This document shows positions 2,691 to 64,000 of a DNA stretch of 64,000 bases, piece by piece. The DNA lies in NCBI RefSeq assembly GCF_000150275.1, contig NW_002060944.1:4964123-5028122 (forward strand), written 5' to 3'. The notes under the pieces are model-generated. The model was not told the origin of the DNA and searched no databases. It saw only the letters and a list, made by a program, of their open reading frames with translations. Every line of letters begins with the position of its first letter. The stretch's first letter is position 1. The translations under genes and the position numbers were made by a program. The DNA is from Trichoplax adhaerens (taxonomy: Eukaryota > Animalia > Placozoa).

Positions 2691-3885
2691 AAAGTGGCTC
2701 GATCATTTCGACTCTGAAAAGTACAGTATAGCAGAGCACAGTACTTTACACTGTGCTGCCATGGAGTACTGTAGACTTATGCTACAGATAGACGGTAGGA
2801 TGGCCGTTGTTACCGGTTCCCAAGCAAAGCGATGATTTAACTGCTGGAGAAAGTGCCTCCATCATTTTGATATTCGTCTACAATCACCAAAGTGCAAGAC
2901 TACATTATTACTTGAAAACGCTGAAAGGAGCACCAAGGTATTTGACATTGTCAAGGGATCCATTGGATCGTCTACTCTTGCTTGTAGTCAATCGATCGAG
3001 TTTACTGTCACTCGCTAGCCTTGATCGCAGTCTTGCTACCCTTGGAAATGTGGTAGAGGCATTGCTGGCAATACAACACAATATACACCATTCATCGATA
3101 CTAGCTAGAGGCTAAAGATTGGACATTTCCATCGTCAAGACAAGAAGAATCGCCTGCCTTTTTTTAGTCTATTATTCTTATACTTTCCCTACTCGGCTAT
3201 CTTGTAAGCATGACATCGAGAAGCAAGTAAGAAAACACAGTGATGTAATAATGATGCTTGTTACAAATGGAAATAATTGCAACATTGGTTTAGTTACGCC
3301 TGTTTCAACAGTCCTTGTTACAACTGTATGAGATGGCAATACTTTATTTCTCAATGCAGTACAAGAGTATATGCAGCTAGACAAACTGCACTTTTGCCAG
3401 GCAGTTGTGAAGCTTACGATAGAAGTAGGTAAAATCTTGTATTGTACTACAGCCTACAATAGGTTACTGATCTGCATCTTTTAGTCATCAAGTTGATAAA
3501 GGACTCGTCTCTTTCGCCATCTTTACTTTCAATCACGACTCTAGATTCGATCGGAGAACTGGCTTGTTTTATTGACACGCCAATCGCCAGATATTACACA
3601 AACCCTAGTGTTTTCTTAGCATAGCATGATTAGCATCCTTGTATTTCCTATTCCCAACGAGTTTACTACAGTAAAAGAGTCTTTGATATCTAAAACACGC
3701 ACACACAACGGTTGCAAAACAAGACGTCATCAGCAACTATTCTACTTTATTGATTGCAACACTGCTCAGTATAGTCGACGATGAAATACTCTGTTCCTAC
3801 CTGATTGCATTCCAAAAGTATTTTACTATTTCAGCGTTTTGTCATCTCATGCATTCATTTTATATCTACCTGTACTGGAATATAG

Positions 3886-6675: not shown

Positions 6676-7172
6676 TTATCCTAGATAAATCTATTGTAAT
6701 TCTACTATAAGCATGATTGGTTTAGAATCGATAACAATGTTGCATAGCAATTCAAGGATGTCTTCTTGATCATACCGATATCTCTCTACTTCGTTGTTAT
6801 AGGTACTAGCCGTTGTTGTTGTAACTAGTGTAGAATAACATTTCTTCAGATAGAGCGAGGCACAAGCTTGGGTGATTTTAAAATTTTACATTACGATAGA
6901 ACTATGTAGTTGACAGCTGCCATAACAACAAGTGCACGTTCAGTCGCTAGAGTGCTTCTAGAAGCTAACGTACGGTTAATTACCATACTTGTGCTTCTGG
7001 TCAATTTTACAAACCATTCCGTATACTCTACAATAATTATAATTAGTCCAGTTTGGTCTATCAGTAATAACTTTATTAACAATTAAGAAAAGTAAATATT
7101 ACAAGAAAAGAATCAACAGATACATTAAATCCTATATAGATCCCCAATTGATTCGCAATGAGGAATTACTAG

Positions 7173-37890: not shown

Positions 37891-39897
37891 AACGTTATTA
37901 TCTAATTTAGTATAATACATATGCATGAATACGCATATTATTGCATACTAGTTTTTAGCTACTGTTTACCTTACTAAAGATATGGCCTTTAAAATACTAT
38001 TGCTAACCGTAAACGAAAAGAAGTATTAAATTAATGAGGTCTCGGACTCACGGCACTGCTATCTGTCGGGTTCTCGCATAAGCAGGTCAGTCTGAATATC
38101 GAACTGTTTGTCTATTTCTCTACTAATTACTCGTATAGCAGTTTCTCGGTAATCGGCGATTAACATGCAGTATATCTTGCCTAAAACTATAGGCGTGAAA
38201 GCAATTTACACTAAGAGGAATCATTTAAGGATTGCATGCCCTAATTAGGATTTTCTTCTCTAATTACGTAGATTTTGTGAAATTGCTCATAGTGCTTTGC
38301 ACCGTAATAGTTAACCTTCATGCTATAATTTAACCCCATTATGCTAGGGCTTTTTCGTAGTCAATCATTATCGTATACGGTATGAGCTAATGAACACTGC
38401 TTACGTATGACCGTATGAACATATAAGAAAGATGAGTTAATTTGACGGTTAACCTTATTATCATGTTTTATTCCATGAGATGAAACCTTACAGTTCCAGT
38501 GATACTTTCTGTAACCCTATGTTTGCAATTTACTAAAATCATGCAAAAGAGCTAATTAGAATAAAAACATTTGAAGAATGTAGATTTGTCGCACAAACGC
38601 CATTTTTGGCTCACAAGCAGTGAAGGATAAGAATGACTTAAAAACACTACAATTTTATATGATTATAATTATTTATAATCTTTAATTTGGAAGATAATAT
38701 TCAATCCAGTCAGATTATTATAAAGCCAATCGAAATGCTGAAATTTAGTATGGCAACATTTATTGGTTTAACGTTTTAATAAGTGAAAAATTTGTAATTG
38801 AACTTGTGCTTAATTATGATTAATAAGAAGGGAATTCACTATCTTCAACATATATTACTGTTGCCAATCATTATTATAAGGGAATATTATTTTAGCACGG
38901 CTACATTCCATTAAAAACTGCTTACATGACAATACTTATTTTACCCAAAATACTAACATCATCAAAGAGCTACTTTAAAACAGTTATTCCTATAGTTACG
39001 ATAGGTCACCAGTAAACAACTTAATTAACAGATAGAAGCTAATTCATAATTATAAGACTAACTATACGAGCGCATTAAATGATATACCACTCAATTACGC
39101 AAAAAACACACCGAAGCAAATTATTTAAGAGATTAAACAGCAAAGGGGAAGATTAGCGTGAAATCTATCTGTTTGTTACTGGTTAGATTAACGGACTAGT
39201 ATTCCAAATAAGAATCTATTAAAGTGCTTCACTAAGTTATCCTTTCTGCCCAAGCCAAAACAACATCCTAACAGAAAAGAAACGGTAAATATTTTCAGGT
39301 AATTTTAAAGGATATTAGGAACTTATACAGTACGTTATCATACATTAATGAACAGATCAATTGAAAATCTATGTTTAAAAATAAATTTACTTTGGAGTAA
39401 AATCGTAAAGAATACGCCTGTTACGTATTACATGTTTTAGTATTAAAAGAGGTCGTAAAATATGACTGCCATTGGATTAAATGATACCGCTTCTTGCGAT
39501 TAAAATCAATTTAGTAAACCTCTAAAACTCCAGATACAGTATTGTAACAAGGGACACCTACAACAGCAGTCATGACATAAAAATTGCACAGTCCTGTAAC
39601 GTAACTTAGTATTGGATTGTAGATTATTAGCCATTTTCAGTATGAAATACGGTATAGTAGCTTTCAACACTTATCATAAGCCTTTTTTAGTAGCCTGTAG
39701 CCATAGATTGTAATTGAAGATTCTATGTTAGAATACAGGTGACTATATGCTGTACTGTACAGTAGGGTGTTAGGTCACTATAGATTCTAGAGACAAAAAT
39801 AGATATGTAACTCATATACTAGGATATGGTTGGTTCATCGTACTTTGGCTGGTAAAAATAATGTCTACGTAAATACTGCAGCAGTTACCATATTAGA

Positions 39898-42800
39898 TTA
39901 TATAGATAGTCCGCTGTTAAACGTTGTTACTAATAATAATCTGAATAACTGTAAAATAAGGTAGAATGTTGCTATGCAGATTATAGCTGTCAATGCTACG
40001 AAGAGTATTCAAGTAGGCAACTTTAGCTTATTCAGTACTTCTGTCTAAAAGTCTTTCTAGTAATTGTATCCAGATAGAATAGAGCTTAGCGTAGATTAAT
40101 TATCTTTGCGTAAAGATCTAATAATTTTCTACAAATTTTGAAATTTCTTAATCGGTTTTATCACATGTCCTAACTTGCAATATCAAATAGATCACTTACA
40201 TTCCCTTGTATGAAAGCGGTTCCCACACCTGTTGTCGTGTCAGTTACTGAGGAAGAAAAAGATATGACCATTACATTCTATTTACATGGCTTTTTAGTAG
40301 ATTGCTCGTGTATTTATAATCTCGATAATACTAATACTAATCGAATCATTTTATTTCACTACGATAAATTAGTACATATCCAAGAAGCGTAAGTAAATGA
40401 AGTTTAAGGCCAAACAAATCGCCTAAATCTTCACTTGTACGGTAGTACTTTAGACAGGAACAAATCTATTCAAAGTGCGTTATTATAGCTTACTTGCTGA
40501 ACGAATTTTGATGACGATTATAATAAATATCCGAGTAGAAAAGAAAGCAAATTTTAGTAATACTGTACATAAGGCTTGCAATCTTATATAACTAGTAGTT
40601 CCGTCGACAAATTTAAATTTTAAGCAGTTAATAATCCAATAAATAATAGATCAATAAGAAAATTTTCAGTTTTTGAAATTAAGGAATACAAATTTTATCG
40701 ACATAAACGTTATTTCTAGTTACACTTACCTGCTGTAATATTTTCAACATTAGGACGTTATCGGAAAAGGAAAAAAAATCATAACGAATGTTAGATTAAG
40801 GAATATTCTATAATTTACTTTTGACTGGTCAACGTCGGACCTTTTCAATACTGTATTAAGTGCATAATATGATTCAACTCACTATCTCTGTTGTAACATT
40901 GTGTGCTTTCATTGGCGCTTTTCCTTTCATAGGGGGTTGTCCTTTCATAGGTGTTGGGCTTCGTCCAACTGAGGGTGATAAACGAAAGCAAAATTAATTA
41001 GTTCCATATTGAAAAACTGGTTTACACAATTACCTTTAGAGTATAAATTGAAAGATTTATTAATATGAGTTTTGTGTAATATTTATGACCATTCCGACTC
41101 GAGTTTGTAATATGATGATATAATTATATTATTCCCTATGATATAGAAGGTACCGGTACTGAAGCCATTCGTCTTTATATTATTACAACTAATTGCTAGA
41201 ATAGCTATTGCCGGTAATTGCAGTATAATAGTTTTGATAGTCAGTACCTTTAGGTTATTGTCACATAACATACAAAACAACTATCACAATTGAATTTAGC
41301 TAGCAATGTTTTTGTATACTGCTGATATGCAGATATTACACAGTGGTATCCTACGATGTAGTCACCGTTAATCTTATAAATCAAGACAAATTGTAATCCT
41401 CTAGAAAACTACTATAATCCCAAATAATCTGTAGAGAAAACTTATTGATGAAAACAAGAGCGCAAAGCATAGCATAAATATCAATATTTACCCGCTATTG
41501 TGCAATAAGGTTGCAGTAGCCATGAAAAGAGTGAAGAATAACATAATTAGTAATTCCTTATTGCAAAATGATAAAATTTTTTCCGATATGTTATATAACT
41601 AATTCTAATCTATAAGTATTTAATATTTGATGATAGCAATGATATCACTGATCAATTACAAATATATCAAGTGCAAAGCATCATCTATTAATACTAACGT
41701 AACCATCGATATATTTAATTGGTGCATGTTCTACGATTACATCATCAATATCGCATTTAACTTTGATGATCTAAATATATAATTGCATTACTAGTCCACG
41801 GCATTTGATTAAATTGATGCTTTCTACGAATAGGTTAGGGGTAGTAATGTAATGAATTACTCAAATATGCAGTGTCTTTATACATGCATATTAGTGATCT
41901 CATTTAACTAGTTACATTATGAGTACTCACAATCTGGGTTCCAGGAATTGAAATTTATTTGAGTGATGATTTGAAATTAGAAAATTTAACAACTTGTAAG
42001 AATGAGACTTTACGTTTCCAAGACTTAACGTAACATTAAGACTGCTACTATACATTGCTGTTGCTGGTACATGTTATTACATGATTACTAGGTACTTTAT
42101 TCAGCTAGTAATAGTAACAAAGTATACCATAAACGCATAGCCTATGTTACTTACTTCCTATATTATTGTAAATTCGCAGTGCGATAAAATTATCGACAAA
42201 AACCAATTCCAAGGTCGTCCGAAAATCACCATGTGAGGGGAAAAAATTGGGAGTATGTCATAAAAGTATTATAACAACTATGAAATCTATGCTACTATGC
42301 TAGCTATTGAGATAACAGAGTATGATCATTATATTAGAGTAGGCATGAAATTATAAAAATAAAATCGCAAATAACTTTAACATCGTTTCACAGCTGTGCC
42401 TATTTGACGTACGATTAAGTAAAATTAAGACTAACAATTATGGAATTAAGTTCAAGATTACTACCTTACTAATGTCATAGTCACTCATGAAATGATTTAT
42501 CCTACTAAGGTTATACAATACTGTACCATTACGCGTATTTCTCGATGGGCGCCGAGATAAATACAGTAGATAGATTTTAATCGTGTATTGTTGATGGTAA
42601 TACCTTCATACAATACAGCAGTCTCTACACTACTATAAATAAGATTACCATTCATTGCCGAATGATTACTTATACTATTCCGTATGTAAAAGATATTATC
42701 TAAATCAAAATAGTTATTGACATAGATTATGTAAGAGATATCATTACTACTTTGTATTAACTGAAAATTTACAACCGCTTTCATTTCTTGATATATTATC

Positions 42801-45800
42801 CAGCGACATTACAACGAAGAAATATAATCGTTATTTTTTAAGTGACTAGACATCTACGTTACTTACCGGCTGCCATATCGTCGAAGGATGCGTGAAGTAA
42901 TTAGCGAGAACGGATAAAAATTTAATACAACCAGTACTAACAGTTAGCAACAATTTGCTATAAAAGCACAAACATAGAACTACTATATGTAAATCTACAT
43001 AAGTACTGCCGTTAAATATTCTAAGCACTCATAAACTGCAGTATATAGACTATCCTAAATAGTATGCTTGTTTTTATAAATAACCTAATTCTCATTGGCG
43101 AACTATTGCTATCATTACCAAATTTAAAATTAACTTGATTGGTATTATCATGTACGTAATGCTGTACATAACTATCTACATAATACTTGAACATTATCAC
43201 TATATTGGTCGTGGCTATAGCATAAGATTTAGAATGCAACGCTCCAACCATCTATAATAACTGTAGCATTTTAATAAGTCAAATGACCGACTTTCTTTTA
43301 CACTCTGATATCAAAAAGTCGAATACTGTATACTTTTTACTAAACTCAGGCAAATACAATGTACTATGCAAGACCTAGTATAACTTCTTTACTAGATGCA
43401 TCATAACGATTATCACGTACAATTTTACAACCATTTTACTTACCACCTTTAATTAGCATTCATTCATGTTTAATTATCGAAACAGATAAATATAAAAATG
43501 ATGAAAGAAGCAATTTTTAGTATACAAATACAACAATCATTTGACTAATAATGACATATTAAGATTGACATATTTCAACCACTAACTCTATTCTAACGTA
43601 GACAACCAATTTGCTATTAACATATCTAATACAAATTTGCCTTTAGGTTATAATAATAACTTTGCATACTCCACGAAATTAAATAAAATAGTAAATCTTA
43701 AGACTGATCACATTTGTAATAATAGTAGATAAATCAGCTTACTTACTTTCTAGATTTTATTCGATAAGCACATACGAGGATTGAGAATTAATATGGAAGA
43801 AAATGAGTTAAACCGACAAAATCAGAATACAAAAGCTTCCTTATATTGAAAGAACTGAATAATTCACTCTTAAGTAAATAATGTCGTCTAACATATATAT
43901 ATATAATTTGTAGTAGTATCCTGACCAAAATTGGTGTAAAATTTTCTATTATACTTACGCCCTATATCGTACGTCAAAAGCCAAATACATTTAGATTTGA
44001 GGAATGCGGAATATGCAAATGCAAAATTTCCAGTTATTTAGTACAAAGTAAGTAAGCTATTATCCTTTATTTTTTACAGGTATATCGCCATATAATATTG
44101 CTGTTATAGTAAATATTCCGTCAAAATTTACTCATTATCAATTAATAGAATTTTTAAATTAATGTTATGTAACATTCATTTTTATTACAAACGCTATAGT
44201 TCAGTAAAAAAAAGTGCTGTAATACTATAGTCTACTGTAGATTAATTCATTGGATATATACGTACCATCTATCGGTTTTATTCGCAACAGAGCCGAGAAA
44301 GTTGAAAGAAAACAATAGAAAACAAGATTGTAACCATTACTTCAATTTTGAGATTCACTGCAGAGCAGTGGTATGTAAAGATTTATACAGTCACTAATTT
44401 ATAGCAATCGCTAGCCATCGTAAGAGTACTTTATAAAGAATAGTTAATCGAAATGGAATTAAAAATTAAATCCTTTAAAGCTTTAATTATTTGCTACATC
44501 ATATAAGTGTCATCTGCGCATATATCCGATTAAACTATAACAAAAAATTCAAAATATTTTTTCGGTAGCTGTAAGTTAGCTTGAACAGTCATAAACGTTT
44601 TCAAACTTACAATCTATTGGTAGATTGATCGTGTAATTTTCACGGCAGGATTGGAGAAAGAGTGTAACGAAAGTATAAATCAAAAATAGGCGAAGTGGTT
44701 AGGATATGAATATAACTCCTTCTCGGGTCACACAACCTCCTCTTATGGTATCTAATTTGCTAATAATATTTCAGCTCAGACAATATAGTATTTAATGGAT
44801 AGTTACAGTATATCATATTATACCACTCCGCTGGCGTATTGTTCACATAATACATCAAAATTTATTATTTCCAACACTAATGACACGAAGCTGACAAAAA
44901 TAAAGACTACATGTGGCATGTAAGAGATGACCTTGCGTAGATTTACGAGAGACAATTTATAACCAATCTCACTAAACACATCTCTAGTGCTACGTTATCG
45001 TAACATGATAATTCGTATGTATAGGTAGGTGTTACGAAGCCTCTGAGTCATTTCATGTAAGACGATTCTATCAACCATGCTCTACCAATGTAGGCTAGAT
45101 TATATTCCATTATTAAGATCGATCCTTCGATGACTATTCTACCTACTTTCTATAAAATATCATTTAATAAAAAATCAGTAACAATTAGTACTATCAAAAC
45201 TAATAAAACAATAACTTTAAACGAGATTAGGGTGAAGTTCTAGTACCTGTATATAATAACTATCAAGGACTTCTAAAAGTCCTCTTGAACTTATATACAG
45301 TATGACATAGTACACACTGTGATATGTAAATGTACATAATATGCAATGATGAAAACTGCCTAAATATCAATTTTTTACTTTAATGAACAAAAGCTTCAAT
45401 AATCTACCACTGATAACGTATATTCTGTCAACGTCAATATAAGCTTACTTCCTAAAGAATTGCGTCCAATGCCACCACGATTGCAATATTGCAATATTAC
45501 GAAAATAAGAGCTCAAGATCAGTATACATTACTTAGGCCATAACATTGAAAATTGTAAATACAATAAATTTACTATTACGAACTTTGTACAACAATACAA
45601 TCAAAGTGATTTTGTAGCTACAGAAGCTTCATTTTATATTGATTTGCCTTAATTATGTTAATTAAAAAAGACATAATGAATCTGAAGTGTCTATTACACA
45701 AGATTACAGCATAGCTAGTCAGATATAGATTGACTGCTAATATCCTTTCAACCAGTCATCAAACTATAGTTTTTGGCTATATAAATTATATAATATTTCG

Positions 45801-48800
45801 AAAGAATAACAGTAAATCATATAGTAATTAATTACTTACTTCCTAGAATTTCCAAAGGTGACGTTATTTATTAAAAGGGAATAAAAAAAGCATTCTGTTA
45901 GCTTGTATAGCAGTTAACGGATAAATCTTAAATAAGAATAGAATTACATATAATTTTGCAATCCTATCTAGATTAAGTTTGCTTATTACAGTATGCTATG
46001 CATCATAAAACAATAAAAATAAATCATAAATTACAATATTTTACAAAAGAGGTATTAGACGTCTATTATACAGTATTTAATCGTACAAGTACATTACAAG
46101 GTATCGCAGGAAGAAGTATAGAGGTTAATCAAATTGATGTTACGTATCCCATTGCAGATCTATTCTTTGTGAATTACTGCATTTCATCACATATCATATC
46201 CCTCCGCATATTTATTCATAAATACACTATGCATACAGTATATCGTATTCACTTTCATAGATAAAATCTACTTACTTGCTGTTATGATTGCCCAAATTTA
46301 AAGGTAAGTAAACGGTTGATGTATAATTTATTGCAGAGACAGACACACAAAATAAAGTTAGGAATGTCAGTACAATACTTTTACATTAAATTATACCACA
46401 TCCGTGAAAATCTTTGCCCAAAAAATCAAATTTAGAATTCATTATAACTTACTCGCTAAATTTTCATATTCCATTAGTGATCAGAATTTCATAAAGGTAA
46501 AGGAAAGATAATAAAATCTTATCGTCAATATCAGTATTTATCAGCGATTGTACCACATAGTTTCAAGCGATTAACATAACACTATATTAACGATGATATC
46601 CACTTCAGGCGTTCAACTAGGCAACATATTACTTTCTACCAATGCAATAATGCTACGGTAGATCCTTTATGACGTACTATTATTAAATATACAGTATAAT
46701 ATTGACTTAATAACAAATTTCAACAAGAAGATTCGTTAATCATTCGTGATATTAAATAATATCCAGAATCACTTTATGTGCCCAGTGAAGTATTATCGCT
46801 CCACTTACAATATCGTATAAAGATTGTGACTGCAAGTCTAACCTAGTGATACTTAAACTTAAACATGTCGTTTAATGCTATGTATAAACTAAAGAGAAGT
46901 ATGCTAAAGATAGTCATCGTAGAGATGTAACGCAAAGCATTCACATGATCAACGATAGTACTTACGCACTATTTCCCACAATCCAATGTTTCAATTTGCG
47001 AAATAAAAGTAAAACAGAAATTAGTTAAAAATTATATTAATTACTCAAGAACCTGTAACACTTTAAAGCTAATTAATTTAATTATAAGTCCTTCCTTTAG
47101 CACAAATACTGTAAACTTTCTATAATTATAATGTACTGTACTATATCCTGACCAAACTAATATAAATGTACGTACATGCAATTTTTTAATGCTATATTAA
47201 ATTATAGACTACTTGATATTAAGGCGTTGGACAATACTGATTGTTATGAAGGTAAAGCTTCGGCCTAGATCTTATGTACGTAATACTAGAATTTTTGCAG
47301 TAATATCTAGTTAATCAAGCAACTCGACGTGCCATCTTTGTAAGCCTAGACATGGCTAATCACTCTACAATGGGTATATACTGGATAAAAATGACTACCT
47401 ACAAGTAATGCCATTTTAAAATATACTGTATTAAGAAGGGAGTTAAAATTAGCAGCACTAGGGTAACTTTTTCCTATTGATATCTGCCTTATAAAGTTCA
47501 AAATAGCTATTAATAAGTCTATGTACTTACTTCCTGCATAGTTTGCATCAATAGGCGAGCATGACCGGTTACCAAAGAGGTAATATAAGGATTTACAATT
47601 AGATTTATAAATCTTAAGATCAATTAATCTAAGTACTCAACGTAAAATATCTGAACGCAATGTAACTAAATTTTAAATCTTGAAATAATATAATTTCTTA
47701 AAGCTAGTAGAGCAAATTAAAGTAACGGAAATGCACTGTAAACATTAAAATGAAACTAAACCCTCCTAAAAGAATATAGTACGGTATTAATTGTAAGCTA
47801 GTATTCATCGCGTTTTCTGCAGGTATTTATAATTTCATGTTTCGGAAAGCTTCATGTATGTATTTACAGTATATTATAAATAAAAAAATTGTCTCATACT
47901 ATTTTCGTATTTTTAACAGTTTTTTGACAAAAATTTGAAAATTTAGAATGCAATATAAAGATTTAGCAATACTAAACTTACGGTCTAAATTTTTTATTAC
48001 GTATCCGAAGCCATTACAGTTGGGCGTCATTATAACGAAATATAATTAAAAGATAGAATTGATCAGTTTAAGTAGCATCGTCTCAAATAAATAGCCTTTT
48101 ATTGAGCTAATGTCGAAGAATCTAGCGCTAGCTATGCCATATACAGCAAAAGGAAATTTTTATTGTCCTTTATAAACTAATGCTGTAATAAAAACATATT
48201 TATTTCCTTTCGTAATAAGTGATATTACTAAGCTGATTTTAAAGGCATTATGCCTACTTAATGAAAATCTCTTATAATCCTCTAAATACGAGAAATGTAT
48301 TTCTATTATGAGTCACTGGTAATTTGAAAGCTTCAGCAGCTTTTCACATTTAATCTCTATTATTAAAATAATAATTTTAATAATCGTAGATCTAGTTTCT
48401 TTCGATTATAATTTGTGGGTTTTATATAATCATATAAAATTAATACAGTTCTGATTTTCTTCTATATTCACAGGGAAGTGAGACATGTTTTGGGCACTAT
48501 ATAATTAACATTCGAACTTACTTGCTATAGGATTTCAATTTCATTGATATTAATCCGAAATAAAAGAGATGCCGAAGAGTAAAGTATACGAACAAAAATA
48601 ACAAAAATTGATTAGAAAAATTTTAAATTTAAAAAGCACCAACGGAATATTATGTTCAGTATGTATAGTTGTTAGAAAGAAATGATAATTTCGATAATTA
48701 TAGGCCTTTTTTGTATCTAATTTATGCTATATGCATGATGCTTTTCAATTAATTGCGGTCAAAAAGAGAAATCTCCGAGAAGCATTAAACTTTCAGAGAG

Positions 48801-51800
48801 TTATAAAATATCAGATTAACTATAGCTGAAGAACGATATAGTACAACTAAAATTATATCAGAGTCCTAACTTTTGAACATTACGACAGTGTAATTTACGA
48901 TCAAGCAACTAAATATCCGAAATTATTAATATAATAAAATGCCTTATAGGATGCTATTCTACAACTTTTTTTTATGGGAATTTTCAAGATTTTTTTACGT
49001 GAAATAATTCATACGTTACTTACCGACTGTAAAATCATTTTCAATTTCATGATTAGCCATCAGATATTACAGTATCATAAAAAATTCAAAGATATCCAAA
49101 ACTATTAGAGCTAATTTATCAGCATACAAGCAATTTTGTTGCATTTAATGTAGATAAATCAAACTATATAACCATAATGGAAATAAAGATAAGGATAGTA
49201 CTGTAATCAGTAGCAGAATAATACAAGATTCTAGCCACTATATTCAGTAATTGATACTTACCAGCTAATAAATATATAATTGTTGAAGGCACCAAGGTTA
49301 AATGAAAGAAAACATTACGCAAGGAATGGTTAGAAACAACAATAGGAAAAATTCTCAGAATTATTTTAATGAATTATCAAATACAACATAATATTAGTTT
49401 GCGATAGTGCTACTTACAGTCTATTGCAATCACGGTTGTACAACGCAGTATAGCATGTTGACGAAAAATAGACAATTAAAAACTAATCTACTTAAATAGC
49501 TTCCAAAAACTTTCATATAGGCCGAATATTAAATTACTAAACATAATTAACTATTTTACTTAAATCTCGTTCTACACAATACAGTATACAACGATTTGGT
49601 AAAGCTTAGATTAAAAAATCATCAGTTAATTTAAACAAGATGTTTCTTTTATAATAATGATATTAAATTGATACTAATTACTGACCTCCTAGTTTATTGC
49701 CGTATCCGATCATAAGACATACAAGTGAACAAATTAGAACAGAAATAAAAAAACGAATAGGTAAATTTTATCCTGAACCAGACTATATTAAATGCTCATC
49801 TACAATCTATCGCCGATAAGTAACAGAATTACATTTAGCAGGCTATATCTTAAATAATAATCTACGCTTAATATGATCATAAACATCATAATAAAAATGC
49901 CGACTATCAGTATGATCTCTACGAAAGCAGGGTAGAGCAATATAATAAAAAGAAATAAATACTAACCGGCTATAAAGATCACAGAACCGTCCGAGATTCC
50001 ATAAAACGAGATGTGATGAAAAGATAGATGCACATTTTCATTAGCTTCTGAGACGTTTAAATTTTTTTAAATATCAACGCAGAAAGATCTCTATAGGTAC
50101 TATATTCCTTTTAAAATGTCCCACTCAAACTGTTATCAGTACATGAAACTGGAAACTACTACACCTTTAACCTAAGAATATTTACTTAAAATTTGAAAGA
50201 TGTCAATATCAATCTGAAATTTTATGAAGCTTAAGTATGCGCAGATAATAATACAACTACTATCAGATAGAACGTTTTTTTCCACATTTTAAATATTATC
50301 CGTAAAATAACGTAATATTTCAAGGTTGATTTAAAGACATGCGAGCAGTTTCATGACCACTAATTAATATAGTGTAATTTACCGAACTATTGAAGTTTGA
50401 ATCGTTAATAACCATAATTAGTATATACTTAATTATAAAACTAATATTTTACGGCATATTCAGATTGCAACGTAATTCGGATATCATTAATACTGTACTT
50501 ACAGGCTATTGGTTGCCAGTACAGATCCAGTAGGTAAGTAAAGGATGAGAACATAGATAAAAGTCAGTTTCAATATAAGTACCGCTGTATATCGAAAACA
50601 ATTTTGCATGACATATAGAGTATTTACTAGGTATTTCAACAACTATCTAAAGTTATATTAAATTGATACTGTCATAAAAATTAATTGCTAATAATTCAAA
50701 TTACTTACCGTCGATGAGTCCTGGCACTAATACTGTTTGAGTTGATAGCAAAGATCATAATGGAATCCAAGTATTAAACAGATATAATACAACTCACATT
50801 ATAAAGGACAGCCTTTAATAAATCGATCTTATTCAATCTCTCAATCGACTTACAGTATATCTATCCTATATCGTCAATAAGTAAAATTGTAAATAATTAG
50901 TAATAAGCTGAAAGCGCATATCCTCTTTAGTATACTGGGGATTAAGATAATTAAAAATATCAAAAAGATTTCAGTTTAACTTACAAATCATCGATACTAT
51001 GTTATGAACCAGAAAATTGTGAAGCAAGATCCGTAAAAGTTAGTATTTTCAGATTGAACGTAAAATCTCTGTATAAATTCCTAGGCTTACCTATCATCGA
51101 TCCTAAAATAGATACAAAAGTAGTTAAGAATTAGTTAAGAATTGGTACTACAAAATATAAAATTTGCGGCTAAGTTGCCGTAAAAATCAACGGGTCATTG
51201 CCAACAGGTGGTAACTATCCGTATTGGTATTACTAAAGATTTTCCTCTGTGGTTGTAAACTTAGTACTTGTTAAATACTCCGTATACTTTAGTTTATATG
51301 TTAAGATTGTACTTACTGATACTATCAAAAGTACCTTAAATGTATATGCGCAGTTTGTAGCATTATAGGTTTACAGCTTACAATAAATAGCGATTTTAGC
51401 TCACTAAGATGTGCGCATGAATCATAAACTTGTAGTAAACTTATAAATCATCTATTAGGCTAATATTTTATTTGTATCCATACTTACGGCATGGAAATCC
51501 TGTTGTGTTTGGTCGTTAAAAGAATACACGAAAGCCAGTATTCATATTAGAAATTTTGCGTAATATCACTCGTAAATATATAACATCTACAACGAATATT
51601 CCGACTTACGGTAAGTCCAATCTACGAAATAGTTATTTAGGGTGTAGAGGGAAGATGTAATAATCATAAGTTCGTTTCTAGTCATTGAAATCTATCAGGC
51701 CGTACAATATCGCATTAACTTACGGAACTTCAACCCTAGTAACGATAACAGAAAGCGTACAATTATTTATTGTTGAAATGACCGTTATGTAATTGCAAAA

Positions 51801-54800
51801 TTATTGCTTATACCAATCTGGTACTATTTTAGCAATTACATACTTAAGGTAAAACGATTTAATGAATGTAACAAATAGTTTTACAGCTAAATATGCGATA
51901 ATTATAAAATAAAAATATTAGACATCCCTGAGCTGCTTAACTTATGAAAATGACTATGATAAATTATAAATATTTAGACATGAATTTAAATCTTAATGTG
52001 AAGTATTTCAATTCTATGATGACAACGTTATAGAAAGGTGCAATTATTTGGTATTCAGCCACAAATTATAATTTTTATAATAAAGCGCGATAAATTAACT
52101 ACGACGTATTTTATATTAAAATATTTCGTATACTAACGGTGCTTCGTCAATAAACATCTCGCTGATGTTTTCAGGAATCCAAAATAATCAGAAAGATATA
52201 TAAGCCATTACATAAACTGAGACCAGTAATCGCGGTATTAAGTTAATTTTCAACTTACGATAATTCCACTCTGCGAGATATTAATAATGAAGAACTAATT
52301 ATTTGCAAACATAGCAGCTCGATTCGTACTGAAAGTCATTGGAATGTTATTTCTTAACTTACGGTGCTCCGATCCTAATGACAATATTAGAAATTTAGAG
52401 TTAATTTGTATATAGAAATAACCATATAGCAGAGCAATCTTAAAAATATATCAATTCTATTACCACAGTATCTACATTTACAGGCTATATATAAGCTATA
52501 ATAACGTGTAGAATATAAGATTTGGAATAACTTACGATGCTTGCAAACTAAACGCAGAGCAATTAGTACCACAAATTGCAGAAATAAGATGACATAATTT
52601 TCATTAGTAATCAAGTAGCTTTAATTTCTTAGGTTTACTTTCAAATAATTGGCTTACTAGGCTGCGATCCTATCAGCAAAAACAACAAATAAATAATTAC
52701 ATTTGAAGAACTTGCAAATTTACCTTACTTTAATTACTAACAAAGTCAAGTAGTTACTATTCCTTATTAAAAACTTACGCTTCATCCATCCTAATAGGTT
52801 AGACCAAAAAACGGAACCATTTTAAAAATGACACATACCATTAGTGAATACGATTATCTATTTCCTAGCTGTTATTGTCTTCTATTATTCCAAAAATACC
52901 AAGCACTACTTACGTTGTATTAACCCTACCAGTACAACGTCGAAAGAATTCAATTACAACTTAGAACTACTCCGATCTTAGCAATATGCAATGAAGATAA
53001 AACAAATTTAAATCTTACGTCTCTTTCTCTCTGGAGTTCAATTAATAAGAATGGAAGAAATTGAAAAGTATTACCAATAAATTTTGTAAATGGAAACCCA
53101 TTGATAAGGGGGCTACAGGTATACGTAGATTCTATCTTAACTTACGTATTATTAACCCTAAATAAGCAATCAATTTAGAAGTCAATTTTTTTTGACTTGA
53201 GATCATAGAAGGCTTACAGCAGTTAGCAAACAGTTTAAACCTATAGCAGTTCAACTTACGGTGCTGTCGCTCTAAAATTGGGCGATTAAAGGAGCAAAAA
53301 TAAGATTTAAAATAATGTTGAAGATGTTACTAATCATTGCTTGCAAATAAGAGGAAGTCGGTCTATATTAATCATTAACTCACGGATCTTCAATCCTAAA
53401 TATAATAACGACTACCATTAATAAATTAAAAAATATCTTAATAAATCCTAAGATAGCTACGAATTGATAACATATCAGCTCAATGCAATAATAATAACTA
53501 AAATGTAAATCTCTTTGTAAAATATTCATTCTACGTTATTGATATCACTGTAGTCAGTCCATAAATGATTACAGAGCACTGTTGTATTCTCGTCTGTCTA
53601 GTGTCATACTGATATGTGGAAAAAATCTAGTAAGCACGAGACACGATCACAAAAGTGAAAACTTACATGGTGCTGAGAAATTAGTATCCACGATGAATAG
53701 TATTCCAATTAGTGATAAGAATTAAAGGATAGCAGGTAGTATTAAAGCAGAGAAGACATAAATTAACTTCTAGGACAATTTAAGGTTATAATTTGGAATA
53801 TATCCAACTGCAAATAGTTGTAGATAAAGCGATCAAATTTGCTAACTAGAAATAATGACAAGCTAGTTTTTGCCTAGCCATGTAGTAACACTATTGTAAT
53901 AATAATTGTAATAATAATCGATCTTAACATAAATAAAATTATGCAAGTAGTAATACCGTAATAGCTACGTTTAAGGAATTCCACATCATACTATTGCAAC
54001 ATAACTGAAGCAAAGCTAACAAGACAGAAATACTATCTGAGAAATAGCAACTTACGAAGTTCCATTCCTTCATATTTTATTGTTTCGGGCATGAAGTCAA
54101 GAAATTGAGAATTAAATTAGTGATCAAATTTCATTTTTACTACTACTGCATTTTCTAAAATAAAGCCACTATTTGCTATTAGATAGATCTTATGGTCAGC
54201 TTAAACTGACACTTGAAATATATCAAATATTTATTTAATTTGTAACCAATACGTTTAAATCTACTATTAGGTTTCTCCAGCCCAGCACTAATTGCAGCAG
54301 TTATTATAATTAAAAATTAGCTCATAATAAAAGCCCTATCTAACAACTATTTCAGAACCGTCATTTCAAGTTTACAACCACAAATTGCCTAGCTAATTGC
54401 AATCATTATAGGTGCGAGAAAGCAAAAGCTATTTTATTCATAATTTAAAATTATAAATAATTAGAAATCTGCTACAGTATACAGCTTCATCAAACCTAGT
54501 GCTAAGAACTGATTCCAATATTGCATATCATCGTAAAGCAAAAGCTAATTATTTTTTATGTATGTTTCAAAATTGGTCACTTAAGATAATGGGTGCAGCA
54601 GTATAGCTTTGACTTTTGAATTTTATGTCTATCAAAGTATCGCTTGTAACAAGAATACTAACTTTGATGTCTCCACTTCAAAGAAATGATGACTTCAAGG
54701 AAGAGACGCCAGCGGGAATGCATCCAATTGTAGTATTGTGAAGGAATGAATTAATAACCAGAGTAATTTTGGCATATTTATAAAGATAATCATAATTGAA

Positions 54801-57800
54801 AGCAAATAATCTTTAAGATGAACTAACGCTAATCAGAAAATAAAGGCAATAACAGGAAATAGACTAAGTTGTACTTGTTTAAATACACTTAATTGGAATC
54901 AGACTACTATACTCGTATGTGCAATAATATTGAGAATTTGTCTTAACTTACGTCTTTTTCGTTCTAAAAATAAAAAATCAAAGAAATACGAGTACAATTA
55001 GTCTCAGTGATTAGAGGAAAATATTTTTAGTACTTTTCCTCGAAATATTATAATTTCACTACATGAAAGCTTAGCAGCAGGTCAAAAATATTAGTAGTAG
55101 CAAGTCGGCATTAAAATTAGTTGTATACGCGGGACGGAGTAAGAAATAGTCTTGCTATTACGTCGACGGCATACGCGAATCGTAAAATTACATAAAGTAA
55201 TTTTATCGTCGTGTGTCCTATCATAAACTTTTAGAACTACATCGTTCTAGAGGGCCTTGGTCCTGATCATTTGCGTGGACAGTATTGTATACGTTATTAC
55301 TGTATTTTATACTGCGATTTACCAATAATTATATAAGTGCTGGTGATACTACTTCCCTTAATTAAGAAGGAGTTAGTATTATTAATACGCGGTTTTAAAC
55401 TACGGATAATATTGGAATCATTCTACTAGACGATGGTAGGAACTAAACAGGAATAATCAGAGTTTTTTCTACTATACAGTCTACAATAAAGGATAAGATT
55501 AGTCCCTGAAATTCGATGGCTATGGACGATCACTTACGTTGCATTTGCCCTAAAAAAGAAGCAAAAAAGATGATGTATTTTACTTTTACATCTTACCAAT
55601 AGCACTATCACATTTTCAAGACGCTCAATCTTCATTCGATAATCAGCAGTAGTTTTTACTATTCAATTTTGAAAGTTTACTTTGTTGTAAGCTAACATTT
55701 AGTTTTAACTATAGCCATGAATAACTTACGTATCTTCAATTCTATGCACCCATGTTACAGTACATTTTTGGAAGAAATGAAAAAAGTATTAGTAGTCCAG
55801 AATAATCACGGATAACTTCTAGTGAAGCAAATAGAATCATTGGACAGCTTACTCATCCAATTCGGAGCTAAATCAAAGAAAGAAAAGCAATTTTAATGAT
55901 CATGATAGTGTTCCGCCATTACCCTCTTTGAGAAGATTTCTGCTGATTAATATCATATACGCTATTAACGCTATTAAATTACTGACTTACTCTGCGTCAA
56001 TGTCGAGCCAATGACTACAAAAAGTGGCAAAGAAAGATAGACAAGTTATTCATTTTGAACATATAGACGAATGACCATAGATAAATTTTTGAAAGCTATT
56101 GCTATACAATATTGCTTATAAATTCTATAATGAATTCATTTCAGCTTGAGTTCTAGTAAATAACGTGTAGACTGCATTTCAAAGACAGTTTTTGAAGGCC
56201 TACTGTGTAATATAGCATGAGCACGTCAATTTCAAAGAGTAAAATGAAATATGCAAAATCAGTTATGAATATTTGCTTGTCGAGTGATTATCTTACATGA
56301 AGTATAATGTAGTCAAGGATATTGAGCAAGATAGCAATACGAATGACCATAGATAAATTTTTGAAAGCTATTGCGATACAATATTACTTATAAATTCTAC
56401 AATGAATTCATTTCAGCTTGAGTTCTAGTAAGTAACGTGTAGACTGCATTTCAAAGACAGTTTTTGAAGGCCTACTGTGTAATATAGCATGAGCACGTCA
56501 ATTTCAAAGAGTAAAATGAAATATGCAAAATATCAGTTATGAATATTTGCTTGTCGAGTGATTATCTTACATGAAGTATAATGTAGCCAAGGATATTGAG
56601 CAAGATAGCAATACGGTACGGAATTATTCATTAATTATTTAATTAGTGAATTTTTCGCCATATTGAATTGCCGCTAGAACTGACTGAGGTCAATTGGCTT
56701 TCAATTGGCTTGCTTATGTATGGTACTGTACAAAGTAAACTGTTCGTGAGTAGTGAGCACGTGTTAGCTAGACTTGACCCACGGAATAGACGTGTGGTAG
56801 CGAAGTGTCATGCACGAGTCACGACATCATTGGATTGACTTCTAAGACCGTAATTGTTTCAAAGCAAGTGGTGTCAACGTGTCAACTCTGTCACTCAAGG
56901 CATGACGCGACGAGAAAAAACGCGGGATCATACCGGAATTGACAATCCACAGGGAAGAATACTTAGTATAGAAACTATAGAAATTACAAAGTAGAAAAGC
57001 GAAATTCCATACAAACGTATTTGCGCCGTCTATCCGATATATACTGTAGAATCCCAATAACTTTTCTATGATGGCGCTTTATGCATTCAATGACGAACTG
57101 GAATTGTATCCATTTTAATGGATAGAAAAAATAAAAACATTCAATGCTATCCTTCTGCTAAAATTATCCTGTTGTCGCACCGTATTCGACAACGACTACA
57201 AAGTCTGTAGTCCATATCGTAAGAAAAGAAACTAGAATAAGTCCTGCCGTCCCAAGGTTACAGTAGAATAGGCTAAGACGCTTTTTTATGGTGCCGCTAA
57301 TATGATAACCGTTGTGCTCTAAAAGACTAAACTACTATTCATTTAAAGCAAGCAGTAAAAATAATGCTATACAATTCTTCGGATAAGTTATCATGATGCT
57401 TTAAATTACCTTCGGTTTCCCCTAAATGACACAGATAGAAGGAAAGAAACGGTCATTTGATTAATATACAATATAACGGCAAAGTGTGCACCCTATACGC
57501 GCACAAAATGGAGACAAATATTCTCATATATCAAGATAGATAACTTACGATCGTTTGCTTTCGTATCATTAAAATTGGATGGAAAATCATTGCATGGATT
57601 TATTCATTACTAAGTCGAAATTGTATGAAATATTATTAAATTTTATTAACTATTACAACGAGTTTCCAGTGAATAATGTCCAAAAAATTGACTTACTTTT
57701 TCATACGATTTCAAAGAGTTGAACCATCCGCCAAAGTCACATTGCGGAAAATAGCACAAAAGTAAGATTCACCATTCCATCAATATAATTATTATAATAA

Positions 57801-58092
57801 TGTCGGTTATACGTGCGTATTTGCTGAATATGATTGCTAATAACCTACCTCAAGATACCCCTAGATAAAAAGATAGTGACAAAGTCAAAATTATCATTTT
57901 ATTCCTGATTAAATTTTAAATTTAGAACAAGTCTATCGGTATTAAATTCTCGAACTCGGATTTAAAAAAATGTAATTGAATACTTTCATCGAAAAGATAA
58001 AATGACAAATATAATTACATTTCAACTGGTGCCATGAAATGGCAGACAAGAGCGATCGTTAAACTGATCGTTATCAATTTCATCGATGTCAT
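39898..58092 (-). CDS. Micro-exon gene encoding a secreted protein: signal-peptide exon 58092-58019, about 28 exons of 6-24 nt (mostly 12 nt), about 24-28 exons of 3 nt, then exons 40968-40883, 40246-40200 and 39948-39898
   Basis: First exon MTSMKLITISLTIALVCHFMAPVE is a signal peptide ending in phase 2. Dozens of AG-(12 nt or 3 nt)-GTAAGT units follow on the minus strand, and the concatenation stays open in phase 2. Confidence 0.8.
40494..50505 (-). other. Array of 3-nt micro-exons
   Basis: AG-NNN-GT with strong donors at (+ coords) 50503, 49967, 49686, 49418, 49262, 49024, 48522, 47982, 47531, 46966, 46453, 46276, 45840, 45449, 45147, 44611, 43959, 43747, 43444, 42867, 42155, 41931, 40730 and 40494. 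Weaker donors at 49804, 46633, 44266 and 41492. Confidence 0.82.
50709..57860 (-). other. Array of 12-nt micro-exons (plus 6, 15 and 24-nt exons)
   Basis: 12-nt exons start (+ coords) at 57849, 57410, 55730, 55538, 54952, 54056, 53384, 53260, 53146, 53019, 52914, 52779, 52658, 52536, 52363, 52259, 51724, 51610, 51488, 51091, 50985, 50854 and 50709 (12 or 18 nt). Others: 24 nt at 55991 and 52138, 15 nt at 55853, 6 nt at 53667. Confidence 0.88.
56069..56615. repeat. Near-identical tandem duplication of about 272 bp (intronic in the micro-exon gene)
   Basis: GAATGACCATAGATAAATTTTTGAAAGCTATTGC...GAGCAAGATAGCAATACG begins at 56069 and again at 56341. Confidence 0.95.
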
Positions 58093-61000: not shown

Positions 61001-62402
61001 GCAATAAACTATATCGTACTCTTCTCTTTAGACGCTAGGAAACTGGTTTAACTGATTAATTAGTGATTTATGAATTTACCGTGATGGTGTGTCCCAACGA
61101 AATGCCTATAAACTCATGGAAAACCACATAACCCACTAAAAAAATTTGAACATAACTTTTTAAATCATTTAACTTTATCTGTATGCATCAAAAATAAAGG
61201 ATAATTTAAGACTTCTGTTGAAAGAAGTTTACGCCATATAAAATTTTACAATCCAAATACGAAAATAATGGTATAATGGAATCATGCAGTGCAGTAATCT
61301 GTTTTACATTCATGTCATCATGATAACATCCGCATTTATAGTAGCTCAAAGAATCAAGATGTTCATTATAAGTAAATTTAGATTATTTTAATAAATAAAA
61401 CTAATCGCATACGACAAAAAGATAACTTCCACTGGGCATTACAATAATTATCAATAACATACGAATAAATAGTGCTACACATTCTATGGGATCTTTACCC
61501 TTTTCAGTGAAATGAATGTTTTATCGCTTGCATAACCTTTAGCTAGTCAATAAGCTAATCGCACCTTAGTACTATTGCTATCTTGAATTAATAATTATAG
61601 TAAAATTGTATTTTACTATACGGATAGATATTACTATTTTACACGTTGAGAAATCTATGAGAAGTAAGTAGCCTGCAATTTATTTTAATTTTCAGATATT
61701 GCTTTATAGTTTATATTGTTTTTCAGTATGAGACTACAAATAATATATAATATAGTCGTTAGCGATCATAGACTCCGTATCACGCTGATATTGCTGTATG
61801 TAAGGGTACATGTATATTGTATCAGTACATTAAAAATTATACAGTTTATCACGACAGGGATTCCCTTTCTGTATCCGTTGCCACAGCTGCATTGTAAACA
61901 ATTTATAATGCAGCGATGCCAAAGAATAGAAAAATAGAACCTTCACCGGGATAAACTGAATAATATACTGGTGTGGTATAGGGTTTTATTATTTTATTCT
62001 ACACAAATATATCAGCAGGGTATGGGATTTATAATGGCTAACGTCTACATTAGTCATAGATTTACATTAAGAAAAAGTAACAAAATCTTAAATGTTGAAA
62101 TACAAGTATAAGATCACGCTATCAATACTGGTGTCGGTAAATGCTCGTATGTATACTGTACAGCACTGTACAACAACATACAGTAGTAACATTATCATTT
62201 CATTACGACAACCTGTAATGCTCCATCTATAAGATTAATAAGAATAACTCTTGTTAGTTCAACGCTTTATGATTATATACATTGCTTCGATCGAATTAAG
62301 TTAAATAAGTTGGATTACTGTGGAAAGATTACTTATTACTCTGCAGTCAAAGATTAACACGTAACATAAAGTTTATGTGTAGGAAGATCGATACATTTAC
62401 AG

Positions 62403-64000
62403 AACAAGCTCCCAGTATGTTATCATGTCAACAATCTCTTCCTCATTTACCTGTACCACAGCTTCACGAAACATTGGCGAGATATTTACGTTCATTACAG
62501 ACACTGATAGATGATAATGAATACGAATCAAACAAACGAATCGTTCAAGAATTTGGCCGAGCTGGAGGTGTAGGAGAGAAATTAACAAGAATAATTCAAG
62601 AAAAAGCAAAAACACATGACAATTGGGTAAACATCGTACAATATATCGTGTGAAAAACACATGTAGTTATGGTTTAAAACTGTCAATAAAGCATAGCGTG
62701 AACTAAACATTGTTGTTGTTGTTTACATTACCCCCAAAACATAACACTCAGCTTTCCTTCTCTAGCAATTTAAGTAAAATGTTAAGCCTATAACCGAATA
62801 ATTAGAGTAATGTAATAACTGAGTAGTATGCTATATCTATTAAACCATTGATCAGCTACTTTCATGATACTCAATGCTGTATCCCTCAAATATTTATTTT
62901 TATTTTATTAAAGTTGTACGATTGGTGGGAGCATAGTGTTTATTTGAATCAACGGAGTTCTGTTTGTCTGAACAATAGTCCAGCATTTTTATTCCCGAAA
63001 CGCTCATTTCGAGATAGGGGCCAGCAAATTAAGTAAGTAAATGTATTAAAATAAATACAACCCATACGTAACTAGCCTTGACTAAATACATATATTCTTC
63101 ATTTTATTTATAGTGTAATTAATATTCATACAGTATCGAATCGGACTTTAAATATTGCATCAGTAGCTATAACTTCTTAATATGACACTAGTATGAGTCT
63201 TGTACTTCATTGGATTTTCGTGAATAACGAAGATCGATATACATAAAATTACTTGCTTTTATTCCAAATGATAGCCTTGATTTCTTCTTATACAGATTTG
63301 CCGCTAAGTTGATCATAAGTATCGTCGAATTTTATTACAAAATCAAAAGGTTAGTTCAATTTTTTGCTTAGAACTTGTGATCGAGCTTGGATAGGACTAA
63401 GTAATTATTGAGATTCCATAAAAAGAGATGCCGCCATATTTGAGAAGTATTGCAGCACTCTCGATTAAATCAACGACTAAAATAGTTATTAGTAAAAAGT
63501 AAATATTTGATAAGTTACATTAGACGAATCCTAGCAGCTGTCATGATAGAATCAGCATACGCTATATAGTATCACTCAACTGAAACTGAGTTTAATAACT
63601 ATGTTTGTACGATAATTATATTTAATTACTAGCGGGGATCTACCTGTGGATAAAATTAGTAATCAGCCAGCATGTATGATGCAGTACAATAAAATATTCT
63701 ATTCCTGTCGCATTCCGGGAAAAACTGTCGATAGTATTGCTCAATATTCTCCAGAATGCGGGCAGCCAGACTTTATCGCTATAGCACATAATAATCACGT
63801 AAGTACAAGCTACAAATAGTAATACTATGACTTATGCCAAAGGTTACTACAGATTATTACTCTTTATCATATAATGTATAGCAATATTTATAATTCTTTT
63901 GGATAGTTTTTTGCGATCGAGGTAGCGAAAAACGATCAAATCTACAGTCGAGAGACGATTGAACAACAGCTTAGTTATGTATTTCAAAAATCATCGAGGC
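62403..64000 (+). CDS. CRAT: Carnitine O-acetyltransferase-like (choline/carnitine acyltransferase family), 5' part; exons about 62403-62626, 62914-63032, 63296-63349, 63633-63798, 63907-end
   Basis: QQSLPHLPVPQLHETLARYL, GGVGEKL, NWLYDWWEHSVYL, QIKFAAKLI, LPVDK...PACMMQY...SCRIPG and HNNHFF resemble CRAT. The start is uncertain and the gene runs off the window. ChAT-like identity is not excluded. Confidence 0.8.

Follow-up and report, generated by a model that had tools for sequence, protein, structure and literature searches.

A probable micro-exon gene of Trichoplax adhaerens with 25 three-nucleotide exons in succession

Flatworm micro-exon genes (MEGs) encode proteins with a signal peptide, whose variation is generated by exon skipping (PMC10526429, PMC7653826). 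In Schistosoma mansoni they comprise 10-20 exons of 6-81 bp, mostly 15 bp (PMC10526429), and such genes are difficult to handle for gene finders as well as for read aligners (PMC10526429, PMC7653826). The operational definition of a MEG asks for at least seven exons among three criteria (PMC7653826). A gene of this kind is described here in a window of 64,000 nucleotides (nt) from Trichoplax adhaerens (contig NW_002060944.1, positions 4,964,123 to 5,028,122), the region studied being the minus strand of window positions 39898-58092 (18 kb). This region probably holds one real protein-coding gene, extending from ~58.2 to 39.5 kb, with its coding sequence divided among ~58 exons. The gene model comprises 58 exons, of which 54 measure 3-24 nt and are divisible by three, and 52 of these micro-exons (exons 2-53) follow each other in an uninterrupted run. 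On all three counts of the definition (PMC7653826), these figures bear out the MEG status that an earlier reading, made from the letters alone (the sequence-only reading), had assigned to the locus.

Several features are shared with the MEGs of Schistosoma, Echinococcus and Hymenolepis, namely a signal-peptide-like first exon, exons that are multiples of three, much longer introns, and a small secreted product (here a predicted one) which lacks known domains and has a basic C-terminal part. The present gene goes beyond the S. mansoni MEGs, with its ~58 exons, 27 of them of 3 bp and 25 of these consecutive (exons 29-53, the other two being exons 55 and 56). The hosts differ as well, since flatworm MEGs belong to parasites whereas Trichoplax is a free-living placozoan. 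An origin independent of the flatworm MEGs is likely.

Exons of 3 nt have been described in bilaterians, for example in Drosophila homothorax and in human RPS24 and MAP4K5, where they are recognised by the major spliceosome (PMC7392893, PMC12207440, PMC8632122). There, they are found singly, or as at most three micro-exons, in ordinary genes and are often alternative, whereas in the Trichoplax gene 25 in succession make up a whole protein region. The class of regulated bilaterian micro-exons, defined by a single alternative micro-exon within a conserved multi-domain gene, does not describe the present case either, with 52 micro-exons in succession and no domain. The literature on 3-nt exons yielded no array like the present one, only single exons or at most three micro-exons, and the literature on Trichoplax or placozoan micro-exons yielded only mitochondrial cox1. 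The structure of this gene is more extreme than any found in the literature.

The most direct evidence comes from RNA. Contigs of four sequencing runs were aligned to window positions 39500-45499, where the larger 3' exons serve as anchors. One run (X4) consists of true RNA-seq data from organism B, which is a closely related organism or strain (contigs mostly at least 99% alike); another (X1) is DNA-like, with an even depth of ~100 and contigs of up to 34 kb. An X4 contig aligned to 42155-43446 carries unaligned letters at both ends. The 27 letters upstream spell exons 41-49 in genomic order and lead into the aligned exon 50 (GTG), ten consecutive exons being read in this single contig, and the 26 letters downstream spell exons 52 and 53 and then run 23 bases into exon 54. 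Another X4 contig continues from exon 54 through exons 55 and 56 into exon 57, of which it carries 30 bases. For the intron 45448-45150 (299 nt), X4 also provides an aligned joint, bounded by GT..AG. Among the 3-nt exons, 45149-45147 (donor GTAGGT) and 44268-44266 (donor GTACGT) were found from the RNA, at unique AG-NNN-GT sites in the matching intervals. X4 thus provides a total of 14 three-nt exons and 14 junctions, all joined in genomic order. With exons 54 and 57 and part of exon 58, RNA touches 17 of the 58 exons.

The nature of these contigs could also be established. The X4 depth is 305 on exon 54 vs 8-18 on introns, and the intron-bearing contigs have spliced ends, which identifies them as pre-mRNA and not DNA. 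No joints are seen in the DNA-like run within the aligned stretch 39500-45499, and the joined form is therefore not a retrocopy. The 3-nt part of the gene is proven at the RNA level. The real, transcribed and spliced micro-exon gene that had been predicted, with its signal-peptide-like exon 1 and more than 50 symmetric micro-exons, is upheld by these 3-nt exons joined in RNA. Further upstream, X4 contains 41% of the words of 50400-56100, which is compatible with transcription of that part as pre-mRNA.

Near-perfect GTAAGT sites immediately following an acceptor are reminiscent of the ratchet points known from long introns in Drosophila. The AG-N-GTAAGT units might thus be recursive splice sites, through which one long intron would be removed stepwise, their bases being absent from the mRNA. 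This appears extremely improbable, since the three bases of each unit are present in RNA, in order, which refutes recursive splicing for exons 41-50, 52, 53, 55 and 56. The spacing is moreover 3 or 12 nt, never 0, with AG directly upstream in only one of the 42 GTAAGT donors of the region, and the units carry an open frame.

As true exons, the units would be joined in genomic order by the ordinary U2-type spliceosome, through near-perfect GTAAGT donors and YAG acceptors. Given introns of 92-1395 nt (median 233), splicing most likely proceeds by intron definition. Partly spliced X4 contigs give some insight into its order. One contig of 1345 nt is spliced upstream (nine junctions) and downstream (two) and retains the exon 50-52 stretch, in which the two introns, of 574 and 709 nt, are the longest of the 3-nt part. 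In a second contig, the exon 44/45 junction is spliced and the 533-nt intron after exon 45 is kept. Intron removal is thus not strictly 5' to 3', with long introns coming last, an order that intron definition would predict; in the proposed mechanism, the longest introns of the gene would be the last to be removed.

The splice motifs themselves form a conspicuous array. On the minus strand of the region, GTAAGT occurs 42 times vs ~6.5 expected from base composition. The 46 kb outside the region have 17 copies on the minus strand, and the plus strand, counted over the whole window, has 25. Of the 42 donors in the region, 18 are preceded by an AG at exactly 3 nt and 17 by one at exactly 12 nt, while every other offset within 0-39 nt is represented by 0-5 donors. 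The two classes are separated in space, the 12-nt class being located at 50.7-55.8 kb and the 3-nt class at 40.5-50.5 kb; two further 12-nt units with weaker donors lie at 57.4 and 57.9 kb. Both the recurrence of minus-strand GTAAGT and the AG at two fixed, spatially separate distances had been pointed out by the sequence-only reading, and both stand.

Lack of an excess over the genome background had been set beforehand as a finding that would refute this reading; a very strong excess is found. Across the assembly (105.6 Mb, 1414 contigs, both strands), YAG-N3-GTAAGT occurs 1886 times vs 2065 in the reversed control and YAG-N12-GTAAGT 1898 times vs 1772, neither being appreciably commoner than its control. 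Here, 17 YAG-N3-GTAAGT are found on one strand of 10.2 kb vs 0.09 expected (Poisson P 5e-33), and 16 YAG-N12-GTAAGT on one strand of 5.2 kb vs 0.05 expected (Poisson P 2e-35). On such statistical grounds, the 12-nt part is very likely real. The branch-point-like motif noticed earlier is confirmed too, with CTAAY present in the last 60 nt of 22 of the 57 introns vs a 14% background (P 6e-6).

The acceptor context differs between the exon classes, with T-rich tracts before the 12-nt exons and A-rich ones before the 3-nt exons, where A occupies position -4 in 15 of 27. A TYGRA motif is found 4-35 nt upstream of 10 of the 27 three-nt exons, vs 3 of the 27 twelve-nt exons and a 13.5% background (P 0.002 in this gene), and upstream of 13 of the 17 units at L002, another 3-nt array of the same genome (see below). 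TYGRA may thus be viewed as a candidate intronic enhancer, though a weak one, as many words were tested. At donor position +7, A is found in 18 of the 27 three-nt exons vs 4 of the 27 longer exons of the gene. Extended U1 pairing as a general rule for 3-nt exons was considered and dropped, position +7 being T in 15 of 17 at L002. The exons, the other 3-nt arrays and the neighbouring genes are listed in Table 1.

Table 1. Positions of the gene's exons, of three further 3-nt arrays and of neighbouring genes (window coordinates unless a contig is given)
Feature	Position	Strand	Details
Exon 1, coding part	58019..58092	-	74 nt; ATG at 58092; ends in phase 2; single copy in genome (DNA, protein)
Exon 2	57849..57860	-	12 nt; donor GTAGGT; good pyrimidine tract; frame kept; sequence-based
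Exon 3	57410..57421	-	12 nt; donor GTAATT; frame kept; sequence-based
Exon 4	55991..56014	-	24 nt; donor GTAAGT
Exon 5	55853..55867	-	15 nt; donor GTAAGC
Exons 6-28 (n=23)	50709..55741	-	21 of 12 nt, one of 6 nt (53672-53667), one of 24 nt (52161-52138)
Exons 6-28, upper ends, part 1	55741, 55549, 54963, 54067, 53672, 53395, 53271, 53157, 53030, 52925, 52790, 52669	-	
Exons 6-28, upper ends, part 2	52547, 52374, 52270, 52161, 51735, 51621, 51499, 51102, 50996, 50865, 50720	-	Alternative starts of exon 28 possible at 50726 or 50732
Exons 29-40 (twelve of 3 nt)	46633..50505	-	Predicted from AG-NNN-GT sites
Exons 29-40, upper ends	50505, 49969, 49806, 49688, 49420, 49264, 49026, 48524, 47984, 47533, 46968, 46635	-	Four weaker donors, at 49969, 49806, 49688 and 46635
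Exons 41-50 (ten of 3 nt)	43444..46455	-	Read in order from X4 RNA contig
Exons 41-50, upper ends	46455, 46278, 45842, 45451, 45149, 44613, 44268, 43961, 43749, 43446	-	
Exon 51 (CCG)	42867..42869	-	3 nt; strong site in window; inclusion predicted from sequence
Exon 52	42157-42155	-	3 nt; read in X4 RNA
Exon 53	41933-41931	-	3 nt; donor GTGAGT; read in X4 RNA
Exon 54	40883..40968	-	86 nt in window, 82 nt in X4 and X1; single copy in genome
Exon 55	40732-40730	-	3 nt; read in X4 RNA
Exon 56	40496-40494	-	3 nt; read in X4 RNA
Exon 57	40200..40246	-	47 nt; first bases TAA, a stop codon when exon 54 has 82 nt
Exon 58 (last), start	39898..39948	-	3' untranslated region in RNA form; in 86-nt form, last 17 codons and stop at 39900-39898
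L002	G000:C1413:9350000-9359999, locus 2965-8591	+	17 three-nt units
L003	G000:C1385:28000-37999, locus 3919-6789	+	11 YAG-NNN-GTAAGT units; introns not obviously repetitive
L004	G000:C1394:617000-626999, locus 4888-7891	+	10 three-nt units
TFIIB repeat exon	6367-6672	+	Family match; ordinary eukaryotic neighbour
GDP-fucose protein O-fucosyltransferase exon	21466-22115	-	Family match; neighbour
Carnitine acyltransferase, start	62375-62650	+	Family match; neighbour

Taken together, exons 2-28 comprise 23 exons of 12 nt, two of 24, one of 15 and one of 6, and micro-exons account for 73% of the coding sequence. The median intron length is 115 nt in the 12-nt part (exons 5-28) and 304 nt in the 3-nt part. 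A TATA-like TATAAAT lies ~130 nt upstream of the coding part of exon 1. Some sites were left outside the model. A candidate extra exon of 21 nt at 46809..46829 (minus strand) has a perfect GTAAGT donor (46808) and a CAG acceptor and is open in the exon-1 frame; a second candidate, 57557-57549 (minus strand, 9 nt), is in frame, with a poor acceptor and the donor GTAAGT at 57548. The perfect GTAAGT at 57696, unused in the model, follows ATGAAAAA (phase 2) and might belong to an alternative first coding exon. Another perfect GTAAGT, at 51316, is also unused: the units preceding it break the frame or carry a stop, and it looks like a dead exon. Intron 3 contains a tandem duplication of ~273 bp (56067-56615), whose two copies are 98% identical.

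The coding capacity was examined by concatenating 41 units chosen by strict splice motif alone, blind to frame. No stop is encountered in the exon-1 frame vs 10 and 3 in the other two frames, while random intron pieces of equal sizes stay open in 0.0002 of trials. No candidate for a hidden frame-shifting exon of 3n+1 or 3n+2 nt was found in the 3-nt array, and the AG-N4-GTAAG matches all lie inside 12-nt exons. The frame also bears on a different interpretation, according to which this would be a decaying gene or a non-coding transcript, still transcribed and spliced, whose tiny exons are relics without a functional protein. Some observations would suit such a decay: exon 54 shows a frameshifting 4-nt indel between the window allele and the sequenced runs, the acceptor of one exon is lost in organism B, the unused perfect donors 51316 and 57696 resemble dead exons, and the searches with exon 1 found no homologue. 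It is nevertheless very unlikely in view of the frame kept open across 52 micro-exons (P ~0.0002) and of the exon GC content, 15 points above that of introns (44.5% in micro-exons, 44.6% in the 6-24-nt exons alone, vs 29.6% in introns). The clean partition of the sequence into acidic and basic parts also speaks against decay, as do an mRNA depth ~30 times the pre-mRNA depth and introns that have diverged beyond recognition while exons and splice sites were kept.

The protein-coding reading meets a difficulty at the C-terminus. The X4 contigs, RNA and pre-mRNA alike, as well as X1, are without 4 nt that the window carries at ~40953-40956 of exon 54. With an exon 54 of 82 nt, the exon-1 frame ends at TAA 40246-40244, giving a product of 194 residues with a repeated P-M-K motif at its C-terminal end. 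With the 86 nt of the window, it continues to 39898 and gives 227 residues. The single open frame claimed by the sequence-only reading thus holds up to the 86-nt exon. Its 59 C-terminal residues require the 4 nt that neither the RNA nor the DNA-like run has, and the C-terminus proposed for the 227-residue product is not supported, the frame reaching the stop at TAA 40246-40244 with the 82-nt exon of the RNA. The extra 4 nt of the window are either a frameshifting allele or an assembly error.

Besides this change of C-terminus brought about by the 4 nt, some further points weigh against the gene as modelled. RNA support begins at exon 41, and exons 1-40 rest on sequence; the RNA comes from organism B, which is not certainly the strain of the window. 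The function proposed has no supporting homologue or domain, and the signal peptide was judged by eye. Lastly, a second frame, in which each 3-nt exon is a whole codon, is open over 87 codons from 50505 to 39898 in the 82-nt form. By a rough estimate, the probability of such a frame arising by chance is well under 1%, and it is unexplained. The exon-1 frame was kept because it reads as basic, in agreement with the other 3-nt arrays of the genome, which are basic too.

The predicted product has a clear tripartite composition. Exon 1 encodes 24 residues, M-T-S-M-K followed by a 14-residue hydrophobic core, and is signal-peptide-like. The 12-nt exon array then codes for an acidic region of 113 residues (25 Asp/Glu vs 5 Lys/Arg, pI 4.05, five N-x-S/T sequons). 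The basic tail of 57 residues (18 Lys/Arg vs 2 Asp/Glu, pI 11.5, with Trp and two Cys) derives mainly from 3-nt exons, and 50.7 kb marks both the change in exon size and that from acidic to basic composition. The product would thus be a secreted precursor of ~194 residues with a signal peptide, an acidic region and a basic tail, in which an anionic pro-piece would precede a cationic peptide, an arrangement known from many precursors of host-defence or signalling peptides. Precursors of the cathelicidin or defensin type consist of a signal peptide, an acidic region and a strongly basic C-terminal peptide. The order is the same in the present gene, with a tail rich in Lys, Arg and Trp, the likeness stemming from composition and not from sequence or fold. 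Secretion, processing and a biological role, as well as use of the 12-nt exons, are presumed, function being suggested by composition only.

Homology searches added little. A phmmer search with exon 1 (32 residues) against 1.84 billion representatives returned no match, but it is uninformative, as 24 identical residues give only 40.9 bits. The 70-residue open frame that surrounds exon 1 gave no candidate in a word search, which covers proteins of 38-122 residues only and is likewise uninformative. An intronic open frame at 42500-42784 with a below-threshold Pfam match to the sterol-sensing domain was taken as a chance match.

The sequence-only reading had gone one step further and proposed a MEG-like diversification, in which regulated skipping of micro-exons would produce many secreted variants from one gene. 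The architecture is well suited to it: all 53 introns 5' of exon 54 are in phase 2 and the internal exons are multiples of three, so that any subset keeps the frame, and in such a phase-2 array a dropped exon also alters the junction codon (K-C-R-K becoming K-W-K for the CCG exon). Four 3-nt exons have weak donors, and skipping is the mode of flatworm MEGs (PMC7653826). In contrast to this flatworm feature, the X4 contigs show one ordered form, in which two weak-donor exons are included. About 80% of the exons have a perfect GTAAGT donor, which is compatible with constitutive use. Diversification by skipping is thus not borne out by these contigs, which drop rare variants and cannot exclude rare forms, and it is at present considered unlikely.

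A natural loss of an acceptor is observed at exon 51. At plus-strand positions 42870 and 42874, X4 has T and not C, by which the minus-strand acceptor AG of the CCG exon becomes AA, while X1 retains the window bases. The X4 contig is unspliced across exon 51, which is probably not an exon in organism B. In the phase-2 array, its loss would turn K-C-R-K into K-W-K, and this case implies that single splice-site mutations can add, remove or change single residues.

The genome was sampled for clustered units at three intron-length windows. A pattern combining a donor, 92-122 nt of intron and a following 12-nt exon together with its donor was found 28 times, five of them in the gene under study, and its sole other cluster is a 132-nt tandem repeat. 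In this repeat (G000:C1410:6210601-6211002 and C780:82-219), each unit consists of a donor, ~110 nt and YAG-N12-GTAAGT. Two of the intron-length windows were used for 3-nt units and revealed clusters at three other loci, L002, L003 and L004, which all read as basic peptides; read as whole codons, L003 gives the Arg-rich S-R-R-H-G-R-R-Q-I-W-A. The genome scan suggested by the sequence-only reading has thus uncovered three more 3-nt arrays and, in the sampled windows, no 12-nt gene array.

These loci resemble the gene under study in their 10-17 AG-NNN-GTAAGT units, their introns of 150-900 nt and their basic peptide, as well as in A-rich acceptor regions, often with a TYGRA-like motif. They differ in phase, their basic reading being obtained with each exon as a whole codon (phase 0, as it seems), whereas in the gene under study the codons straddle the junctions (phase 2). 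At L002 and L004, the acceptor is preceded by a shared conserved sequence, AATCTAAATCGAA, then a few bases and ATAG, which points to related tandem repeats. In contrast to these recognisable repeats, the introns of the gene under study share no similarity, and a recent tandem duplication was discarded after an all-against-all BLAST of its 57 introns returned only two trivial matches of 23-33 nt. The 12-nt exons are no more alike than would follow from the position-specific composition they have in common (P 0.13). No paralogue was detected in the genome, the only matches being the self-matches of exon 1, at the DNA and protein levels, and of exon 54, at the DNA level. The gene fits this local class, that is an AG-NNN-GTAAGT array spliced in genomic order, with a basic, putatively secreted tail. 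Among the sampled loci, it is the largest and structurally most elaborate of the 3-nt arrays, and the only one with a 12-nt array.

According to current splicing models, recognition of very short internal exons is difficult and depends on special help. A row of 25 three-base exons, coming after 27 exons of 6-24 bases, represents a natural stress test of such models, in an animal whose lineage split off near the root of the animal tree. MEGs are not confined to parasitic flatworms, and placozoan gene catalogues are probably without a class of small secreted peptides. The locus also offers handles for studying the measurement of exon ends at single-codon scale, through its splice-site array, its candidate intronic motif and its natural dead-acceptor variant. 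It may tentatively be proposed that the ordinary placozoan spliceosome defines dozens of consecutive 3-nt exons without error, and that a class of secreted cationic-peptide genes exploits this ability, residues being added, removed or altered singly as splice sites arise or disappear, for which the dead acceptor of the CCG exon in organism B would be an example. Regulated skipping within an individual might act likewise, in which case a peptide repertoire would be written at the level of splicing.

Far from the gene, in the GC-richer first 4 kb of the window, a 21-nt word at 2583-2563 (minus strand) recurs at 2379-2359, 204 nt apart, beside CAGTA-like repeats. This 2359-2583 repeat (minus strand) is a short tandem repeat.

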